A stretch of 64,000 bases of DNA, taken from Orbicella franksi. Its lineage: Eukaryota. The stretch spans positions 7,750,001 through 7,814,000 of the forward strand of contig OZ116698.1 in NCBI GenBank assembly GCA_964199315.1, read 5' to 3'. Each line of letters starts with the position of its first letter. Position 1 is the first letter of the stretch. The notes below the pieces were generated by a model that saw only the letters and a program-made list of their open reading frames with translations, did no database searches and had not been told where the DNA came from. This document shows, piece after piece, positions 43,901-56,128 of the stretch. The position numbers and the translations under genes are program-made.

Positions 43901-46571
43901 TAGTAAATAATCTATTTTCATTGAAATGAAATGTTCTTTACATAATTTATGATAGACAGTTGTAAAATAATGAATAAATTATAATTATTAATCATTCAGT
44001 AGCCTTATAGTGCTTTACCTGCTGCTCATTTCTGTTTGATGGCAGTTGCTGCTGAAACTCCTGCAGTGAACAAAAGTATATTAATTTATACACTAGTGAA
44101 ATACAACCTAATCAAGATATTGTATTAAACAATCTCCAGGCAGAACATTCAGAAGGATGCCTAAAGTTAGGAAATTGAGAGATAATGAATTATGGCAACA
44201 GCAATAATAACACAACTACAAGTGAATTTATTTTAATTAATAAATTAAACTCGAAAACTGAAAATATTTTTACAAGTTCTTCCCACCAGATTCAATTACA
44301 ACAACAACAACAACTTATCTATTACTCACACATTTACAATTTTACAAAAATATAATTATACACTTTACACTAAACACTTTATTATTAAAAATAATTAAGT
44401 TAAAAAAAAAAACTTGACTATGACAACAGTGTGAACCTGCAGGCAGTCTAGGCTAATCTAGATGGGCCACATCTTATCTGATTGATACTACACCTCAGAG
44501 CTATGACTAACTAGAGAAAAGCTAAATGATGGGTAGAAATTAATCAGGCACTAAATTTAAGAATTTGAGTCAGGGTGTTGACTTCAACATAGTAATCCCT
44601 ATCTTAAAGAGTCTCAAATAAAAATCTGCGAATTTGTTTCTTAAAGCTTGGTTAAGATATATCTCCCCAGCCAGGAGAAATTTGATTCAATCCATAATTT
44701 TGCTCCAGTTCTCGCAAAAGAGCATTTGAAAATTTCCAACTTAACTTCTTTCCGAAGATAATTTCCTTTTGCGGCATGCCTTGTGCTGTACCCATGAATT
44801 TCATTTGATTCAATATTTAACTGTCATATACACGCTCCTGACAGTTTGATACAGCATCATAATCACCTGAAGGAAATATCCTATTTACCTTCATGTAGCT
44901 TGCTAAATCTTCTTTATCCCTCCCCCTTTTTACAGACTCTTGAGCTTTTTGATTCAGCATAAAGTATTTATCTAATTTAAATCAAACAATGTTTTGTAAC
45001 CAATCAAATTTTAGATCAATACAATTATTTAATATTTACATAACTACAGTGGAATTCTGTGCAAGTAATATTTAATATCTGAATCATGTTACTAATTAAT
45101 AGTGATAATGAGGTTGATGAGAACTACTGCCAGTGAAGTCATTAATAGAACTAGCAACATGATAAACAAAATAGTGCTAATTATGTGATAAAGTACCTTA
45201 GGTCTTCTTTCTCCACCTTTTGCCCTTTTAAATTCCCTATGGACAGGATCTTTTTTAATCTTTACTTCCTACAGACAAAACATGAGCGTTGTAATTATTC
45301 CCAAGAAGCAAGAACCTTTTAACACGAAAATTTCAGTAGTAAGATCATGAGAAATCCAAGGGGGGGCACCATAACTTACATCTACAATGTTAAACAGTAG
45401 CAACTTGCTATACAAATCAAACTGGCTATCCATGTGGGAGGCATGATGGTAGATTAATGATCAATTCAGTAGATTCTAGGACCTTCATAGTGTAATTCAA
45501 AATAATACCATCAGCAGCAATTTAAAGGAACTAACTCAGGGTTTGTGCATCTTGAAAAGTTTGGCCTAAATGTTTCAAGTTCCTTGTTTATAATCCATGT
45601 TAAATTTCCCTATCCTTGCTCCATTATGGTTTATTAATATCTCTTTGGTGCTTTCCTTTCTTGGTTAACTATTATTTTCAGTTTTCCTTCAATTTAAAGA
45701 TAATTTTGTTTTTGGCCAAAATAACGGTAACTCAAAATACCGTGACTTAGCTTGGTATCATGGCAGAGATTTTGTGTGGGGTCATTAAAAGTCTGAACAC
45801 TGTTAACAGTTACAACATTCAGAGCAACTGCAGAGTACCCGGCCACTTCATTCACATGTGTCGGTGTGCTTTGAAGAATGAGGTATATAACAATAGTTGC
45901 TATTCTTATTCAATAAGATGCAAATATGTGGCCATGTATTCTGCAATTTAGCCCAACATTCAATATTGCATACCCCTGAAGCAATTAGCTTCTTAGCAAT
46001 CTCTTTAGCATCTTCAGGAGCATGGGAAATTTCTGCTGGAGCATCTGAAGAAAATATTTTACACATGTTAACTTTCAGTTTATGGAACCCAAGTCCAGCT
46101 CTCACATCTGACAACATGAGTACCACCCTTTTTTGCGAGTCTGGGGGCATCATGCTCCCTTGAAAAATTCACAAGTATACAGTCAAGCCTCTCCACAATA
46201 GCCACCTTGAAGATAGAGGAAAGTGGCTGTTGTAGAAAGTATGACGGCTTGTAACCAATTAAATGTGTTTATGTGTAATATTGTTGTTGCTAAACAATCT
46301 TTGCCTTTAATGCTGGCTTCGTCACTGACCCCGCTTTGTTCCTGTCTTGACGACAACTGGAGTTTCAGTCTTTTCCTTCGACTTTTGAAGCGCCTTCTTC
46401 TGTAATAACAAGACAGAAAATACACTGTCTAGCAAATGTAATGTGGTAGAGAAAAGTACAGAATAAATCTATACAACAGCAAGAAATTAAACCGAGGTCT
46501 ACCTTTTTCTTCAACTGAGCAAACTTCTTAAGAAGGTATTCTTCCTCCGGGGTTAGATTAGGTAAGCCCAT
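40993..46571 (-). CDS. NELFE: Negative elongation factor E (RRM protein, about 263 aa)
   Basis: Exons 46571-46503 (LTPEEEYLLKKFAQLKKK), 46399-46330, 46044-45974 (AKEIAKKLIASG), 45268-45197 (FKRAK), 44060-44019, 43847-43813 and 43583-43540 (KNLYESFV), 43080-43037, 42849-42780 (RRM start GNTIYVKG), 42576-42540, 42271-42217, 41692-41581 (IKVALSRRQP), 41063-40993 (REIVSYDDL*). The middle small exons are less certain. Confidence 0.88.
41800..42002 (+). mobile_element. SINE 3' body with V-domain-like core
   Basis: ACACTTTACTCTCGCAGTG..GTATAAATGGGTA..GCGATGGACTAGCATCCCATCCAGGG..GCAGACTTTAC. Family recognised from memory. Confidence 0.6.
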
Positions 46572-46756
46572 GGGTCGTCTCTATTGTTTCAGAAAATCAA
46601 CAAAACTTCACAGAAATCGTAAAATCCGCCATGATTATTCGTCCGATGATTCTTCCACCATCTTGGCTTACGGGATGCATGTGAGTCTTCGTTAGCACCA
46701 CACAGCGGACACTCATTCACTTCCTGCTTCCTCCAGAAGCTCGACTTAATTTCATT
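46572..46756. promoter_or_regulatory. Compact bidirectional promoter between NELFE and BCL10a
   Basis: 185 bp between divergent start codons, CpG-containing. ETS-like CACTTCCTG at 46718-46726; YY1-like CCATCTT at 46658-46664. Confidence 0.6.
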
Positions 46757-48938
46757 ATGGCTGCGAACCAATCTGAAGTATACTGGTCTTTAAAAAATGA
46801 AGTTTTAATCGAGCTCAGAGACCTGTTGGTTGATAAACTAGAATATGAAAAGACCTTGAGTTATCTGCGATCCAAGAGGGTGATCGATAGGCGCGACGAG
46901 GAAGATATAAAAGCCGAAAGAACACGAACGAGGAGCAGAGAAAAAATGTTGGATATTTTAAGTGACAAGGGCCCCACGGCTTTCGACCATTTCTGCCATG
47001 CAATAAGAGAGAGATGCACGAATCAACAATACTTGCTGGACAAAATCCTTACCTCATTCGAAAAAAAGAAGCAAGAACGAAGTAAGCACGCTTACATAAT
47101 TATAAGAAGTGCTGAATAGACTATTTAAGCTTAAAATAAGCTTAAGCTTAAGTTAAAACTTATTTTTAGAATACGTGTCACTGATTGTGATTGGGCTTTT
47201 GTCGTAAGCTTGTGTGTCCCTTTCCCAATCACGTTAGATGAGGAAATAGTCTGGTGCAGATCTTGAGGAAAACTAAAATTGATGGCAAGCTTTTTATTTG
47301 GGCAATTTCCGGCTGTCCAGTTTTAAGTTTCAGTTTGAAAGGGACTGTCAATCAATTCACGAGTTAGGGGGTTCGAATTCAAAAACCAATGGGGGGTATA
47401 ACTACATTTTGTAACAACAAGTTCATCCCAGGAATGCTCAACTAAAGACAATATGCAAGAAAAGCAGCCTCCCAATAATTTCCTTAATGATGTTCCATTG
47501 AAGTCCATTGACAGATGCATCATAAGTCAGAGCAGACATAATTTCTCAATTAAACCGTTATGGTGCTTTTCAGTAACACCCGACCTCAGAAATTGAAAAC
47601 CTAACTAACAACTACATCTTTTGCTGCTGCTGACTGCATAATAATGATGGCACTCAATGAACCTTGAAAAGAAGAAACAAACAAAAATGATCAAAATCAA
47701 CGTGTATCAGTCACAACCCTCAAACGTGAGCTTTTGAACCTTTTGCCATGAACATCTGTTTTCTGAGAGGTCCAACATGGTTGACAGCAGCAAAAAATGC
47801 AACCATTGTTTGAGCAGAGTTCACGTATGATTGACAGGCATGGTGAAGGTGTGACACATTTCTTTGTTAGTACCATATCTATAGGGAGTTCCACAGTTGC
47901 AGTTCTCGTAACTAAAATCCTTGGAACATTTTTATTGACAGTTCTTAAAGAACTACCACCAGCTAGCTTACACAGAAACATTTCCAGTCCATCAGAGGAT
48001 TCAAAGCTTGTTGTCATGGTAACTGGTGTGACTGATTTAGATAATTTACCCAGTCCAGGTGATCCTGGAGCTCCAATGCCACCAGATGAAGTGGATGCTG
48101 AGACAGGACACCATAGACCTCAAAGTAATTGAATGTATAACTATTTAATAATAGTTAAGAAGTAGGAAATGGTATGCATCTTTTGAAGCCTTATACAAAC
48201 AGGAAAGAAAAGTTGGGATATTATATTGTAAAGACATGCTTGACCATTGCAGTTTAAAACACACAACTTGATAAGCAGCGGTGAAATAGCTTGGAAAACA
48301 ACAACAACAACAACAAAAAAAAAAGGTGCAGTGCCCTACCAACTGAGTCATCAAGCCAACTGGGACCTGGTCACCTTGTGAGTTTGTAACATACCCATAG
48401 ATGGTAAAATTTATAATGCAAACCTGAGGTTTCCATATTGTATTTTCAAACTCCCCATACCTTCTTGAATGCTTCATCAGGTGATGTACGTAATAAACTG
48501 CCATGTTTTTCCCTTTCATATAGCACAACCAACAAATTTTAATGATACGTCACAACTGTTTTACACAGCCTCATCGTGCCATTTTAATGACTGCACAATC
48601 AATAAGAATGTGAATTTTAAATTGTGATCAAAATTTTGTAATAATTTCTGTTAGAATGAAAAGCCTTTAATTCCCAAGAGTGCGTGATCAACATTTCAGT
48701 CAGATCAATTGCCAGTTGAATTTGAGAATGCAATGTTTCCATCAGACTGCATAAGCATGTACAGTACACTAACCCTCTTATATTTCTTAATTAAATATTA
48801 CTAATAGCAGTTTTGTTCTTTGTGAACTTTTTTTCTGATGTTTTTAATCCTTGTGTTTCAGCTCATCAGGCCAATTCAGCACCAAACACTCCACCACCAT
48901 CATACTCATCAGATTTACCACCACCCTACACTGAGTGA
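46757..48938 (+). CDS. BCL10: BCL10-like CARD adaptor, copy a (about 194 aa)
   Basis: Exons 46757-47081 (CARD: YLRSKRVIDRRDEEDI..LLDKI, compare human HLRAKKILSREDTEEI), 47942-48124 (LPSPGDPGAPMPPD, compare human LPRPGDPGAPPLPPD), 48862-48938 (PPPSY..LPPPYTE*). Splice sites are canonical and phases consistent. Confidence 0.88.
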
Positions 48939-49545
48939 AAAGTATTTACAAAAAGCAGAATTATATTATTACTCAGTGTACAGAAGTTTATAGTAGGTGG
49001 TAAAGATATCTATGCCATTCATTTGTGGTGACAGTGGCTTAAATACCTTTATAAATGTAAATAACTATGTTTCTTTAGCATTTTTATATTTCCTTAAAAT
49101 ATTCTGGTATGCATGGTTTAAAGGAATATTTCCACATGCAGATAATGTCTTGTTCCAGAATTATGGCAAGGATAGGGAGGAGAAAGAACTCAAAGTAGCC
49201 TACATTATATAGAACTATAAAACAAAATCTTTATTTACACAGTGTCCATTTCACATTAGTTTGCTTTTCTAATAATTAGAGCCATACAAATTGCTAATTG
49301 TATTTCAAAGTGTATTACTAAACCCCTTCCTTGACCTCCCCAGCCCCTAAAAAAGTTATCAATCCAATGAAGGCAAGTATTGAAATGATATCCCTTACAG
49401 AAAAAAAAGTTATGTCATCTCCCCCTTGGCCACTCAAGAAATATTTTAAGAAAATTAATTACTGTTTCATGTAAATTACCGGTATAACTAATTAATTATG
49501 GCCCATAGTTAGTAATCAAATGCTATTCATGGCAATTAATGAATA

Positions 49546-52032: not shown

Positions 52033-52327
52033 ATTCACCCTTTCTACAAACTTAGACGTCCAAATAATTGTTTTACTGATGCACTAGATGTGCCGAGGAG
52101 TGTGCAGGTTTATTATCATGCATTTGCTGAATTTTGACTTAAGCAACCTGCAAACTACAGATAAATTATCATTTTTATTTAAATTATGTAATTTGATTTC
52201 TTCCCATGTACAAGTAAGTCTTATGTGGTTCAAGTAAGATCAGCTTGTAAACAGTTGAATGTGTATGTTTATGATGCGGTTCTGTTTCTGAACAATCTAA
52301 GCCTATAACGCTCGCTTCATCACTGAC

Positions 52328-52561
52328 CCCGCTTTATTCCTGTCTTAACGACAACCTGAGTTTCAATCTTTTCTTTCGCCTTTTGAAGCGCTTTCTTCTA
52401 CAATAACAGGACAGAAACATACACTAGCAAATCCAATGTGGTAGAGAAAAGTAGAGAATAAATCTTCATAACAACAACAAACCGAGGTTTACCTTTTCCT
52501 TTAACAAAGCAAACTATTCAAGAAGGTATTCTTCCTCCGGGGTTAGATTAGGTAAGCCCAT
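52328..52561 (-). pseudogene. NELFE: Truncated NELFE duplicate (exons 1-2 only)
   Basis: Reads MGLPNLTPEEEYLLE*FALLKEK with an in-frame TAG at codon 16, then an exon-2 copy KKALQKAKEKIETQVVVKTGIKR. No further exons; homology ends in intron 2. Confidence 0.9.
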
Positions 52562-52706
52562 GCGTCGTTTTATTAATTTTTTTTCCAGAAAATCAACAAA
52601 ACTTCACAGAATTCGTCCGCCATCTTGGCATGTGAGTCTTCGTTACTATTGTACAGCGGACTCCATCTCACTTCCGCGACTTCTTCCATTTCAAATCCAT
52701 TTCAAT
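52562..52706. promoter_or_regulatory. Duplicated bidirectional promoter (pseudo-NELFE/BCL10b)
   Basis: 145 bp paralogue of 46572-46756. YY1-like CCGCCATCTT at 52617-52626; ETS/GABP-like CACTTCCG at 52669-52676. Confidence 0.55.
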
Positions 52707-55700
52707 ATGGCTGAGACTTCCGCTCTGGAATCTGAAGTATACTGGTCTTTAAAAACTGAAGTTTTAATAGAGCTCAGAGACCTGCTGGTTGATAAACTAG
52801 ATTATGAAAAGACCTTGAGTTATCTCCGATCCAAAAGGGTGATCGACAGGCGCGACGAGGAAGATATAAAAGCCGAAAGGACACCAACGAAGAGCAAAGA
52901 AAAATTCTTGGATATCCTGAGTGACAAGGGCCCAACGGCTTTTGACCATTTCTGTCATGCAATAGGAAAAAAATGCACAGGTCAACAACACTTGCTGGAC
53001 ATAATCCTTACCACATTCGACAAAAAGAAGCAAGAACGAAGTAAGCACGCTTAAATATAAGAAGTGCTGAATAGACTATTTAAGCTTAAGTTAAACTTTT
53101 AGATTTACGTGACACTGATCAGGCTGTTGTGATAAAATTACGCGTTCCTCTTCCAATCGCGTCAGATAAGGAAACTTCGAAATAGTCTGGTGTAGATCTT
53201 GAGGAAAACTTAACTTGATGGCAAGCGTTTTATTTGGGCAATTTCCGGCTGTCCATCCAGTTTCAAGTTTCAGTTTGAAAGGGACTGTCAATTAATTAAC
53301 GAGTTAGGGAGTTCGAACCACAGAACCATTGGGGAGTACAAACACATTTTGGGATAACTAATTCATCCCAGGAAAGTTCAACTAAAGATAATATGCAAGG
53401 AAAGCAACCTCTGCATTGCTTAATGATGTTCCATTGAAGTCCATTGACACATAATAAGTCCAAGCAGACATAATTTATTAATTAAAATATCTCTATTGAG
53501 CCTTTCACCTTTCATGTTTTGCCGCTGCTGACTGCATAATTACGGTGATGGACAAAACACTGACCCCTAGTCCATGGACTACCCTAATGAACTACCCCTA
53601 AAAAAATGCTATTTCAGATGAGTGGTATGTTAAGAAGCTGCGATTATATACTTATACTGCATGGAGGATGCTTTTCTTTTCACTCCGCAGTGCCTTTAGC
53701 TGCCATTTTGAATAACTATACTGAATAAAATTGATCCAATCCAGACAACTCTTTTCCGAAAACGTTTATCTAGAAAATAAAGATGTTGTTGTTGTTGTCT
53801 GAGACAGTCTCTGGGATGTTGTGGCATGGTAGCTTAATAGCGACTTTGTTGATGATTTGTCCTAGTGTACTGTTTCAAAATTGGTCCATACTCCAGTAAC
53901 AAAGGAGGAGAAAGCTTTGATAGACTACCATATACTGAGTCTCGCAAAACCACAAAAATGTCCACATAATTATAGTCCAGGCCAGCCAAGAATACTACTG
54001 CGTCCACTCCACTCTGAATTTTTGTAGCGTAGTCGTTGGAATTTCCTGCTGTCCCATAGCTTTATCCTCATTCCCATTTCTATTTCATTTTGATAGACTC
54101 AGGAAAAAACCAGAAGAATAGCTGCTTCTGTGCCATAATTTTCGGCACAAAACAAGCAAAACAAATCATGAGTAACGTCCTGAAGATCATTTCGTCTGTT
54201 CAAGAAAGACTGAGCTACTGAATCACATGGGAGCAAGACTGAGTTGTCCACAGAATATTTGATTTGATTTGAGTCTACGCTTTTTGTGTACAGCAGTTGT
54301 TTTATGCAGTATAGTTATTCAAAATGGCGGCTGAAGGTGTTGCGGAACGAAAAGAAAAGCTTCCTCCATGCAGTGTAAGTATATAATCACAGCTTCTTAA
54401 CTTACCACTCATCTGGAATAGTATTTTTTAGGGGTAGTCCATTTTAGGGTAGTCCATTTGGGTAGTCCATTAGAGTAGCCCATGGACTAGGGGTCAGTGT
54501 TTTGTCCATCACCCATAATTACAACAGTATTCAGTGAACCTTGAAAAGAAGAAACAAACAAAAATGATCAAAATATATCACTCACAACCCTCAAATGTGA
54601 ACTTTTGAACCTTTTGCCATGAACATCTGTTTAGTGAGAGGTCCACACAGATGATTGACAGCAGCAATAAATGCAACCGTTGTTTGAGCAGAGTTCACAT
54701 ATGATTGACAGGCATGGTGAAGGTGTGACACATTTCTGTGTTAATATCATATCTATAGGGAGTTCCACAGTTACAGTTCTTGTAACTAAAGTCCTTGGAA
54801 CATTTTTATTGACAGTTCTTAAAGAACCACCACCAGCAAACTTACACAGAAACATTTCCAGTCCATCAGAAGATTCAAAGCTTGTTGTCATGGTAACTGG
54901 AGTGACTGATATGGATGATTTACCCAGTCCAGGTGACCCTGGAGCTCCAATGCCACCAGATGAAGTGGATGCTGAGACAGGACACAATAGACGTCAAAGT
55001 AATTGAATGCATTACTATATGTAGCTGTGTAATAATAATAAAGAAGTAGGAGATGGTATGCATCTGTTGAAGCCTTATACAAACAGGAGAGAAAAGTTAT
55101 CAAGTCAAAGGGATAATTTATTGCAAAGACACGACTGATCATCACTGATAAACACACAACTTAAGCAGCTGTGGATTTAAAGCCTGTAAAAAAATTCAGG
55201 CTTCAACAGGTTCAAGCCCATGACCTCTGTGATACCAGTGCACCTGCTCTATCAGTTGAGCTATCAAGCCAACTGGGAGCTGGTCATGTTGTGAGCTCAT
55301 AGATTGTAAAGGTTATACAGACCTGAGGTTTCCATATCATACTTTCAAACTCTCCTGTACCTTTTTGTATGCTACATCAGGTGATGTATGTAATAAACTG
55401 CCATGTTGGGATAATATATTGTAAAGACATGATTAATCATTGCAGTTAAACATGCAACTTAAGCAGCTGTGGATTTAAAGCCTGAAAAAAACGTTCAGTC
55501 TTGAACGGGATTTGAACCCATGATGTCTTTGATATCAGTGCACTTGCTCTATCAGTTGAGCTATCAAACCAGCTGGGAGCTGGTCACACTGTATTGGGAG
55601 CTCATGGATGTTAAAGTTTATAGAAACGTGAGGTTTCCATATTATACTTTCAAACTCTCCCATACCTTGTTGAATGCTGCATGTACATCAGGTGATGTAT

Positions 55701-56128
55701 GTAATAAACTGTCATGTTTGTTTCCTTTCATGAAGTTCAACAACAAACTGTAATGATATGTCATAATGACAATCAATAAGATTCAATCAATAACAATGTG
55801 CCTTGCAAATTGTGATCAAAATATTTTTGTAATAATTTCTGTTCAAATGAAAAGTGTTAAAAATTATAATGCTGAAGCGTGGTCACATTTGAATAAGATT
55901 TATTGCCAGTTGAATTTGAGATTGCAATGTTTCAGACTGAATTTAAGCATGTACACTAACCTCTACATATTTCTTAATTAAATTTCCCTAAATAGCAGTT
56001 TCATTTTTTAAACACTTTTTCTGATCTTTTTTTATTCCTTTTTTTTTTCAGCTCATCAGGCCAACTCAACACCAAACATTCCACCACCATTATACTCATC
56101 AGATTTACCACCACCCTACACTGAGTAA
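52707..56128 (+). CDS. BCL10: BCL10-like CARD adaptor, copy b (about 197 aa)
   Basis: Exons 52707-53040 (CARD), 54816-54998 (LPSPGDPGAPMPPD), 56052-56128 (PPPLY..LPPPYTE*). Frame and splice sites are intact and paralogous to copy a. Confidence 0.88.
53544..54513. mobile_element. Mutator-like non-autonomous element with 9-bp target duplication, in BCL10b intron 1
   Basis: TIR GGTGATGGACAAAACACTGACCCCTAGTCCATGG and its reverse complement; CATAATTAC on both sides; empty site in BCL10a at ~47636. Confidence 0.8.

Follow-up and report, generated by a model that had tools for sequence, protein, structure and literature searches.

In the coral Orbicella franksi the BCL10 protein ends in a short spliced tail with two conserved PPxY (PY) motifs, and on balance this tail is probably a docking site for WW domains, the likeliest partner being a ligase of the NEDD4 family, which would link BCL10 to ubiquitination. 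The window analysed is a stretch of 64,000 nucleotides (contig OZ116698.1, positions 7,750,001 to 7,814,000 of the forward strand), and positions below are counted from its first letter. BCL10 is the CARD adaptor of the CARD-CC/BCL10/paracaspase (CBM) signalosome. By polymerising, it acts as the switch in an immune signalosome older than the split between cnidarians and bilaterians, and a conserved PY tail on it would be a concrete and cheaply testable link between the adaptor and ubiquitin ligases that may also explain the NEDD4-family link to mammalian BCL10 despite the PY motif missing there. Components of the CBM complex have been connected with the bleaching responses of corals (PMC5978004). 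Public databases already contain these proteins, and the novelty lies in recognising on them a candidate WW ligand that is conserved and restricted to one lineage.

By domain, PDB match and motif comparison the assignment of the gene as a BCL10 orthologue, in two tandem copies (a and b), is sound. The exon 1 product, P0001, has a CARD domain (PF00619) and its best PDB matches are the human BCL10 CARD (8czd, 6bze and 2mb9; E 1.6e-7), followed by RAIDD at 8e-5; for the orthologue P0014 the best PDB match is likewise the human BCL10 CARD. In both copies there is a LPSPGDPGAPMPP segment, matched in the alignment by human LPRPGDPGAPPLPP, and an LPxPG(D/E)PGAP motif is common to the coral, vertebrate and invertebrate proteins, a proline-rich motif of this kind being shared by all Bcl10 homologues (Staal 2018, PMC5978004). 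The nearest named proteins, from Porites lutea and Montipora capricornis, stand at NCBI as 'B-cell lymphoma/leukemia 10-like', in trees the gene falls with named BCL10, and a search of the genome returned the two tandem BCL10 copies only, the remaining CARD matches being no more than 43% identical.

Each copy has three exons and phase-1 introns (read by eye and assembled by script), all on the plus strand. Exon 1 of copy a (46757-47081), with the CARD, runs from the ATG to a phase-1 donor, GTAAGC at 47082, and exon 2 (47942-48124), with RNA joints at both ends, encodes the linker containing LPSPGDPGAPMPP and closes at a donor, GTAATT at 48125, that sits just 5′ of an in-frame TGA (48130-48132). 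Exon 3 is coding over 48862-48938, its stop TGA being at 48936-48938, and the assembled coding sequence is open for 585 nt and specifies 194 aa. The 3′UTR (48939-49500) has an unbroken RNA depth of 6-10 to the end of the mapped region and extends past 49500. Copy b, whose product is 197 aa, has its CARD in exon 1 (52707-53040), with the same GTAAGC donor; exon 2 (54816-54998), with acceptor and donor as in copy a, is 94% identical to its counterpart, and exon 3 (56052-56128) closes with TAA.

Exon 3, joined in frame, is the principal final coding exon in copy a, because RNA joints and the JGI contig L028 link 48124 to 48862. RNA reads were mapped on 46300-49500 at 97% likeness. In two raw PolyA RNA-seq runs the joint from 47081 to 47942 (GT..AG) is crossed by 16 and 14 reads, and the phase-1 joint from 48124 to 48862 (GT..AG) by 10 and 14, those with a C>T variant at 48862 included. 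The contigs of a third run give the same joints; across the runs the joint from 48124 to 48862 is present in X23, X24 and X8, and L028 is 47061-48124 fused to 48862-48983 at 100% identity. Full splicing at homologous junctions is also seen in the Logan contig L029, which comes from a related coral and encodes protein P0009. An earlier note on this DNA had proposed exon 3 from the letters alone and had said that transcripts ending at the TGA of 48130-48132 would speak against it; the reads from 48124 to 48862 and L028 pass that codon by, and the splicing of copy a for which the note had looked to transcripts is present in both RNA runs and contigs. For copy b the splicing of exon 3 is predicted, as splice sites and frame are intact and L029, encoding P0009, has the same junctions. 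The exon 2/3 junction pattern of either copy was absent from the metagenome contigs, a collection from which near-genome records were possibly omitted.

The RNA depth in intron 2 is 1-3 versus 8-10 in the exons, and therefore spliced RNA predominates. A minor unspliced fraction retains intron 2 (48125-48861), and the protein from it would end ...RPQSN* with no PY tail. This RNA may represent pre-mRNA, or else a minor isoform lacking the tail, and because some RNA keeps the intron the tail is possibly absent from some of the protein. P0064, a BCL10-like protein of 159 aa from a Logan contig, groups beside Nematostella and stops directly after the LPLPGQPGAPPLP motif; it probably stems from an intron-retaining transcript without the last exon, like the unspliced form in the window. 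The reads also have variants at 48862, 48937, 48940, 48944 and 48945, of which the C>T at 48862 makes the junction codon Ile in place of Thr and the G>A at 48937 changes the stop from TGA to TAA, the letter being that of copy b. They are probably alleles of copy a and possibly include traces of gene conversion between the copies. Cross-mapping of copy b reads as the source of the variant letters at 48937, 48940 and 48944 was rejected because the 3′UTR of copy b, at 52-61% identity, is too diverged for the 97% threshold.

The first residue of exon 3 in copy a, Thr, is specified by a split codon, A 48124 with CT 48862-48863. Beyond it 48864-48938 translates as HQANSAPNTPPPSYSSDLPPPYTE*, and in copy b, whose exon 3 reads (T)HQANSTPNIPPPLYSSDLPPPYTE, 56054-56128 translates as HQANSTPNIPPPLYSSDLPPPYTE*; both exon 3 stretches are preceded by a pyrimidine-rich tract and AG. 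The PY motifs of copy a are PPSY (48894-48905), kept as PPSY or LPSY in seven coral sequences, and PPPY (48918-48929), the terminal PPxY kept from corals to Hydra and Clytia, while those of copy b are PPLY (56084-56095) and PPPY (56108-56119). All satisfy (L/P)PxY, the pattern of class-I WW ligands, and the two motifs are set four residues apart, with 8 from Tyr to Tyr. The copies differ by a Ser-to-Leu replacement (TCA to TTA) at the free x position. The earlier note had placed this change at the variable position with both PPxY surviving in both copies, and the codons agree; its translations of the two last exons match exactly. When the 25-residue tail was shuffled, two or more PPxY arose in 0.2% of trials, and the two-PPxY tail exceeds the chance expectation so calculated. 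An ORF over exon 3 in an alternative frame (48838-48993, LIRPIQHQTLHHHH...) was excluded because the RNA junctions fix the phase.

Among the sequences gathered, PPxY is found in every cnidarian BCL10 identified and in no bilaterian BCL10 identified. Both major coral lineages are represented among the seven coral sequences with (P/L)PSY-x3-4-(x)PPPY near the C-terminus, and the NCBI models of Porites and Montipora finish with the same tail. Nematostella vectensis BCL10 (XP_001625400; P0029) has two PPPY and ends ...PPPPPYTSLPPDDPPPPYDEPR. There is one motif in the BCL10 of Hydra vulgaris (XP_012563591), which ends ...EPPPPYYE, and one in that of Clytia hemisphaerica (...EPPPSYAESTLKYS). Because hydrozoan BCL10 has a single PY, on these sequences the tandem pair is a hexacoral or anthozoan state, a single terminal PPxY being the pan-cnidarian feature.

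Six further proteins from metagenomes or transcriptomes, with no species name, each have one terminal PPxY. They were assigned to cnidarians by the tree alone, supplemented for P0046 by Tara contig names; the alignment for the tree was cut from the LPxPG motif onward, so that the tail itself was excluded. In this tail-free tree five of the six join the named cnidarians, and P0031 is basal to the clade with its placement unsettled. A constraint that unites every PY-bearing protein in one clade is not rejected by the AU test (p-AU 0.34). The gene for P0046 is intronless and lies on Tara coral-reef metagenome scaffolds.

On the bilaterian side a profile search supplied 113 vertebrate BCL10 proteins, from sharks to human, and none has a PPxY; four have an unrelated LPxY in mid-protein. 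Named invertebrate BCL10 was taken from the members of sequence clusters, and PPxY is absent from those of Branchiostoma, Ptychodera, Lamellibrachia, Liolophura, Lottia and Haliotis. The earlier note had taken the human protein to lack PPxY, which the tail of human BCL10 (P0189/P0243; ...LPRPGDPGAPPLPPDLQLEEEGTCANSSEMFLPLRSRTVSRQ) bears out. It had also pointed to alignment over Cnidaria, lophotrochozoans and chordates as the way to judge its proposal, with absence from other corals as a reason to abandon it. The seven coral sequences carry the motifs, and among the BCL10 sampled over those groups PPxY is cnidarian only. Its picture of a tandem PY tail in cnidarian BCL10 that mammals lack holds for presence in Cnidaria and absence in mammals, and is refined for hydrozoans, with their one PY.

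Comparison of the copies and of the tails shows the PY motifs to be under constraint. Exon 3 is the same in the two copies at 72 of 77 nt (93.5%) and free of indels. Identity is 72% (82% without gaps) over the final 300 nt of intron 2 and 52-61% over the opening 60-300 nt of the 3′UTR. In the alignment of hexacoral and hydrozoan tails P-P-x-Y is kept, x is free (S, L, P or A) and the flanks vary. The tail is predicted to be non-globular, the setting typical of short linear motifs in disordered tails. AF2, given a 23-sequence alignment (A2), models the CARD of the close orthologue P0009 (residues 1-104) at pLDDT above 94 and residues 105-187 as coil, where pLDDT is 53-76 and climbs a little in the final 20 residues.

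Between the copies exon 1 (46757-47081 versus 52707-53040) is 89% identical, versus 94% for exon 2, and in a tree of the CARD copy b joins the orthologue of another coral (support 100/90), copy a being more diverged. The duplication may be older than a speciation; alternatively, evolution may be faster in copy a. Head to head with copy a on the minus strand is a neighbouring gene with its first exon at 46571-46503 (MGLPNLTPEEEYLLKKFAQLKKK) and an intron at 46502-46400, the joint of which has 23-28 reads per run. Its 5′ block (46300-46620) is repeated upstream of copy b (52301-52616) at 84% identity with the ATG kept, and therefore the tandem duplication also took the 5′ end of the neighbour and the shared promoter region. 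A 106-aa ORF on the opposite strand (47697-48017, minus) overlaps both intron 1 and exon 2 in copy a and has a 118-aa counterpart in copy b (54631-54987); the raw-read runs have no RNA depth ahead of exon 2, and for neither of these opposite-strand ORFs is there evidence of a gene.

The genome encodes at least one candidate partner of the required type. WW domains of NEDD4-family HECT ligases pick their targets via PPXY or LPXY (PMC3842946), and two reviews count BCL10 among the targets of NEDD4 and ITCH (PMC3842946; PMC4679856 citing Scharschmidt 2004), in line with what the earlier note had said of mammalian BCL10. At G000:C13:22886579-22904913 (+) there is an ITCH/WWP-like ligase gene with matches to four WW domains and then to HECT on one strand, and in a PDB search its WW4 is most like WW4 of ITCH and WWP1. 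The ligase loci are L009, L011, L013 and L015; the first residues of WW1-3 are split off by an intron, and WW4 is whole within a single exon (L009:1480-1608). A complex prediction for this WW4 with the last 40 residues of P0020 (85-124) scored 0.08 and was counted neither way.

As proposed, the non-globular end of the tail bears two class-I WW ligands, PPSY or PPLY and PPPY, with which it would dock WW domains, the likeliest being those of a NEDD4-family HECT ligase such as the product of the ITCH/WWP-like gene. The ligase would then ubiquitinate BCL10, or proteins on the BCL10 filament, and so would set the level of BCL10 or the duration of signalling. The tail may, as the earlier note had suggested, be a built-in degron. 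In vertebrates NEDD4 and ITCH would have to act on BCL10 via other contacts, because the PPxY is gone.

NDFIP proteins and alpha-arrestins are PY adaptors that recruit HECT ligases or switch them on. The coral motifs could in like manner bring a HECT ligase to the BCL10 filament for signalling chains or for activation of the ligase, and not for the destruction of BCL10; the evidence of motif and conservation is the same as for docking that leads to ubiquitination of BCL10, and we consider this unlikely while giving it some weight. Paracaspases from before the jawed vertebrates are without the TRAF6-binding sites of MALT1 (Staal et al. 2018, PMC5978004) and those of Nematostella are without NF-kB-activating scaffold function (PMC5978004), and therefore there is room for another E3 entry point; the tail, if it served as one, would be the part by which the cnidarian signalosome recruits an E3 as its output. 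Against this, the C-terminal proline-rich region was dispensable for MALT1 activation in human-cell assays (Staal et al., PMC5978004). A bolder version, a shade less probable, would have the terminal PPxY as an ancestral E3-recruiting module of the CBM signalosome in cnidarians, the PY array of polymerised BCL10 capturing and activating an ITCH/WWP-type HECT ligase in place of the ubiquitin output that vertebrates draw from the TRAF6 sites of MALT1, with the action of NEDD4 and ITCH on mammalian BCL10 as its remnant once the motif was lost.

The assignment to a ligase is not specific because PPxY is read by many WW proteins, YAP, KIBRA, MAGI, Salvador and WWOX among them. Coupled tandem WW domains typically bind pairs of PY motifs that lie close together. 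A non-ligase reader (YAP/Yorkie, KIBRA/WWC, MAGI, Salvador or WWOX) would tie BCL10 to Hippo or junctional scaffolds, and to this we give the same small but real chance as to ligase recruitment for signalling. Such class-I WW domains recognise the same motif and lie near the coral WW4 in the PDB search, and at least 23 WW matches occur in the genome, two of them as a tandem pair (G000:C2:21812269-21812596). The literature search gave no link of BCL10 to these proteins, however, and it is NEDD4 and ITCH that are recorded as ligases of mammalian BCL10.

Less probable again is a use of the tail that WW domains do not read, whether as a proline-rich ligand of SH3, EVH1 or profilin or as sites of Tyr phosphorylation. 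All BCL10 have a proline-rich C-terminus, which has been called of unknown function (PMC5978004), and Pro, Ser and Thr are abundant in the coral tail, but the exact P-P-x-Y is kept from hexacorals to hydrozoans amid a free x and variable flanks, and this is the signature of a PY ligand and not of general proline richness. That exon 3 is not translated in this frame, through a stop at 48130-48132 or use of another frame, with the motifs there by chance, is scarcely credible: the low depth across intron 2 does reflect some unspliced RNA, but in two raw-read runs the spliced joints exceed intronic coverage, the phase-1 junction gives an open coding sequence, and independent spliced contigs and the models of Porites and Montipora share the outcome.

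Bcl10 of Nematostella has received experimental attention. The function of its CARD is conserved with human MALT1 (Staal et al. 2018, PMC5978004), and CARD-CC and paracaspase binding and filament formation have been shown for it (PMC5978004, PMC9342958), the work of Rodriguez Gama et al. 2022 (PMC9342958) being on its CARD only. PPxY, WW domains and NEDD4 have no mention in Staal et al. 2018 or Rodriguez Gama et al. 2022, and a full-text literature search found no paper on a PY motif in BCL10. Nematostella Bcl10 (XP_001625400) belongs to the same orthologue group as the coral proteins and has two C-terminal PPPY as in coral, but the spacing is wider, Tyr to Tyr being 12 residues versus 8 in the window.

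Like the coral proteins, vertebrate BCL10 (human O95999-type) has an N-terminal CARD and, in a C-terminal half that is not globular, an LPxPG(D/E)PGAPxLP motif. In vertebrates it serves as adaptor in the CARD-CC/BCL10/MALT1 complex. The coral proteins (194 and 197 aa) are shorter, and the vertebrate tail is longer and Ser/Thr-rich, with a conserved F(L/Q)PLRSR end that is absent in cnidarians and with no PPxY. Tandem PY motifs are frequent among the clients and adaptors of NEDD4-family ligases. The comparison on the ligand side is with NDFIP1/2, the alpha-arrestins and TXNIP, Smad7, ENaC and EBV LMP2A, in whose disordered tails the WW domains of HECT ligases read a single (L/P)PxY or a pair of them (PMC3842946). 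These are unrelated to BCL10 and none is a CARD filament former, and the binding demonstrated for them is what the conserved coral tail leads one to predict for BCL10.
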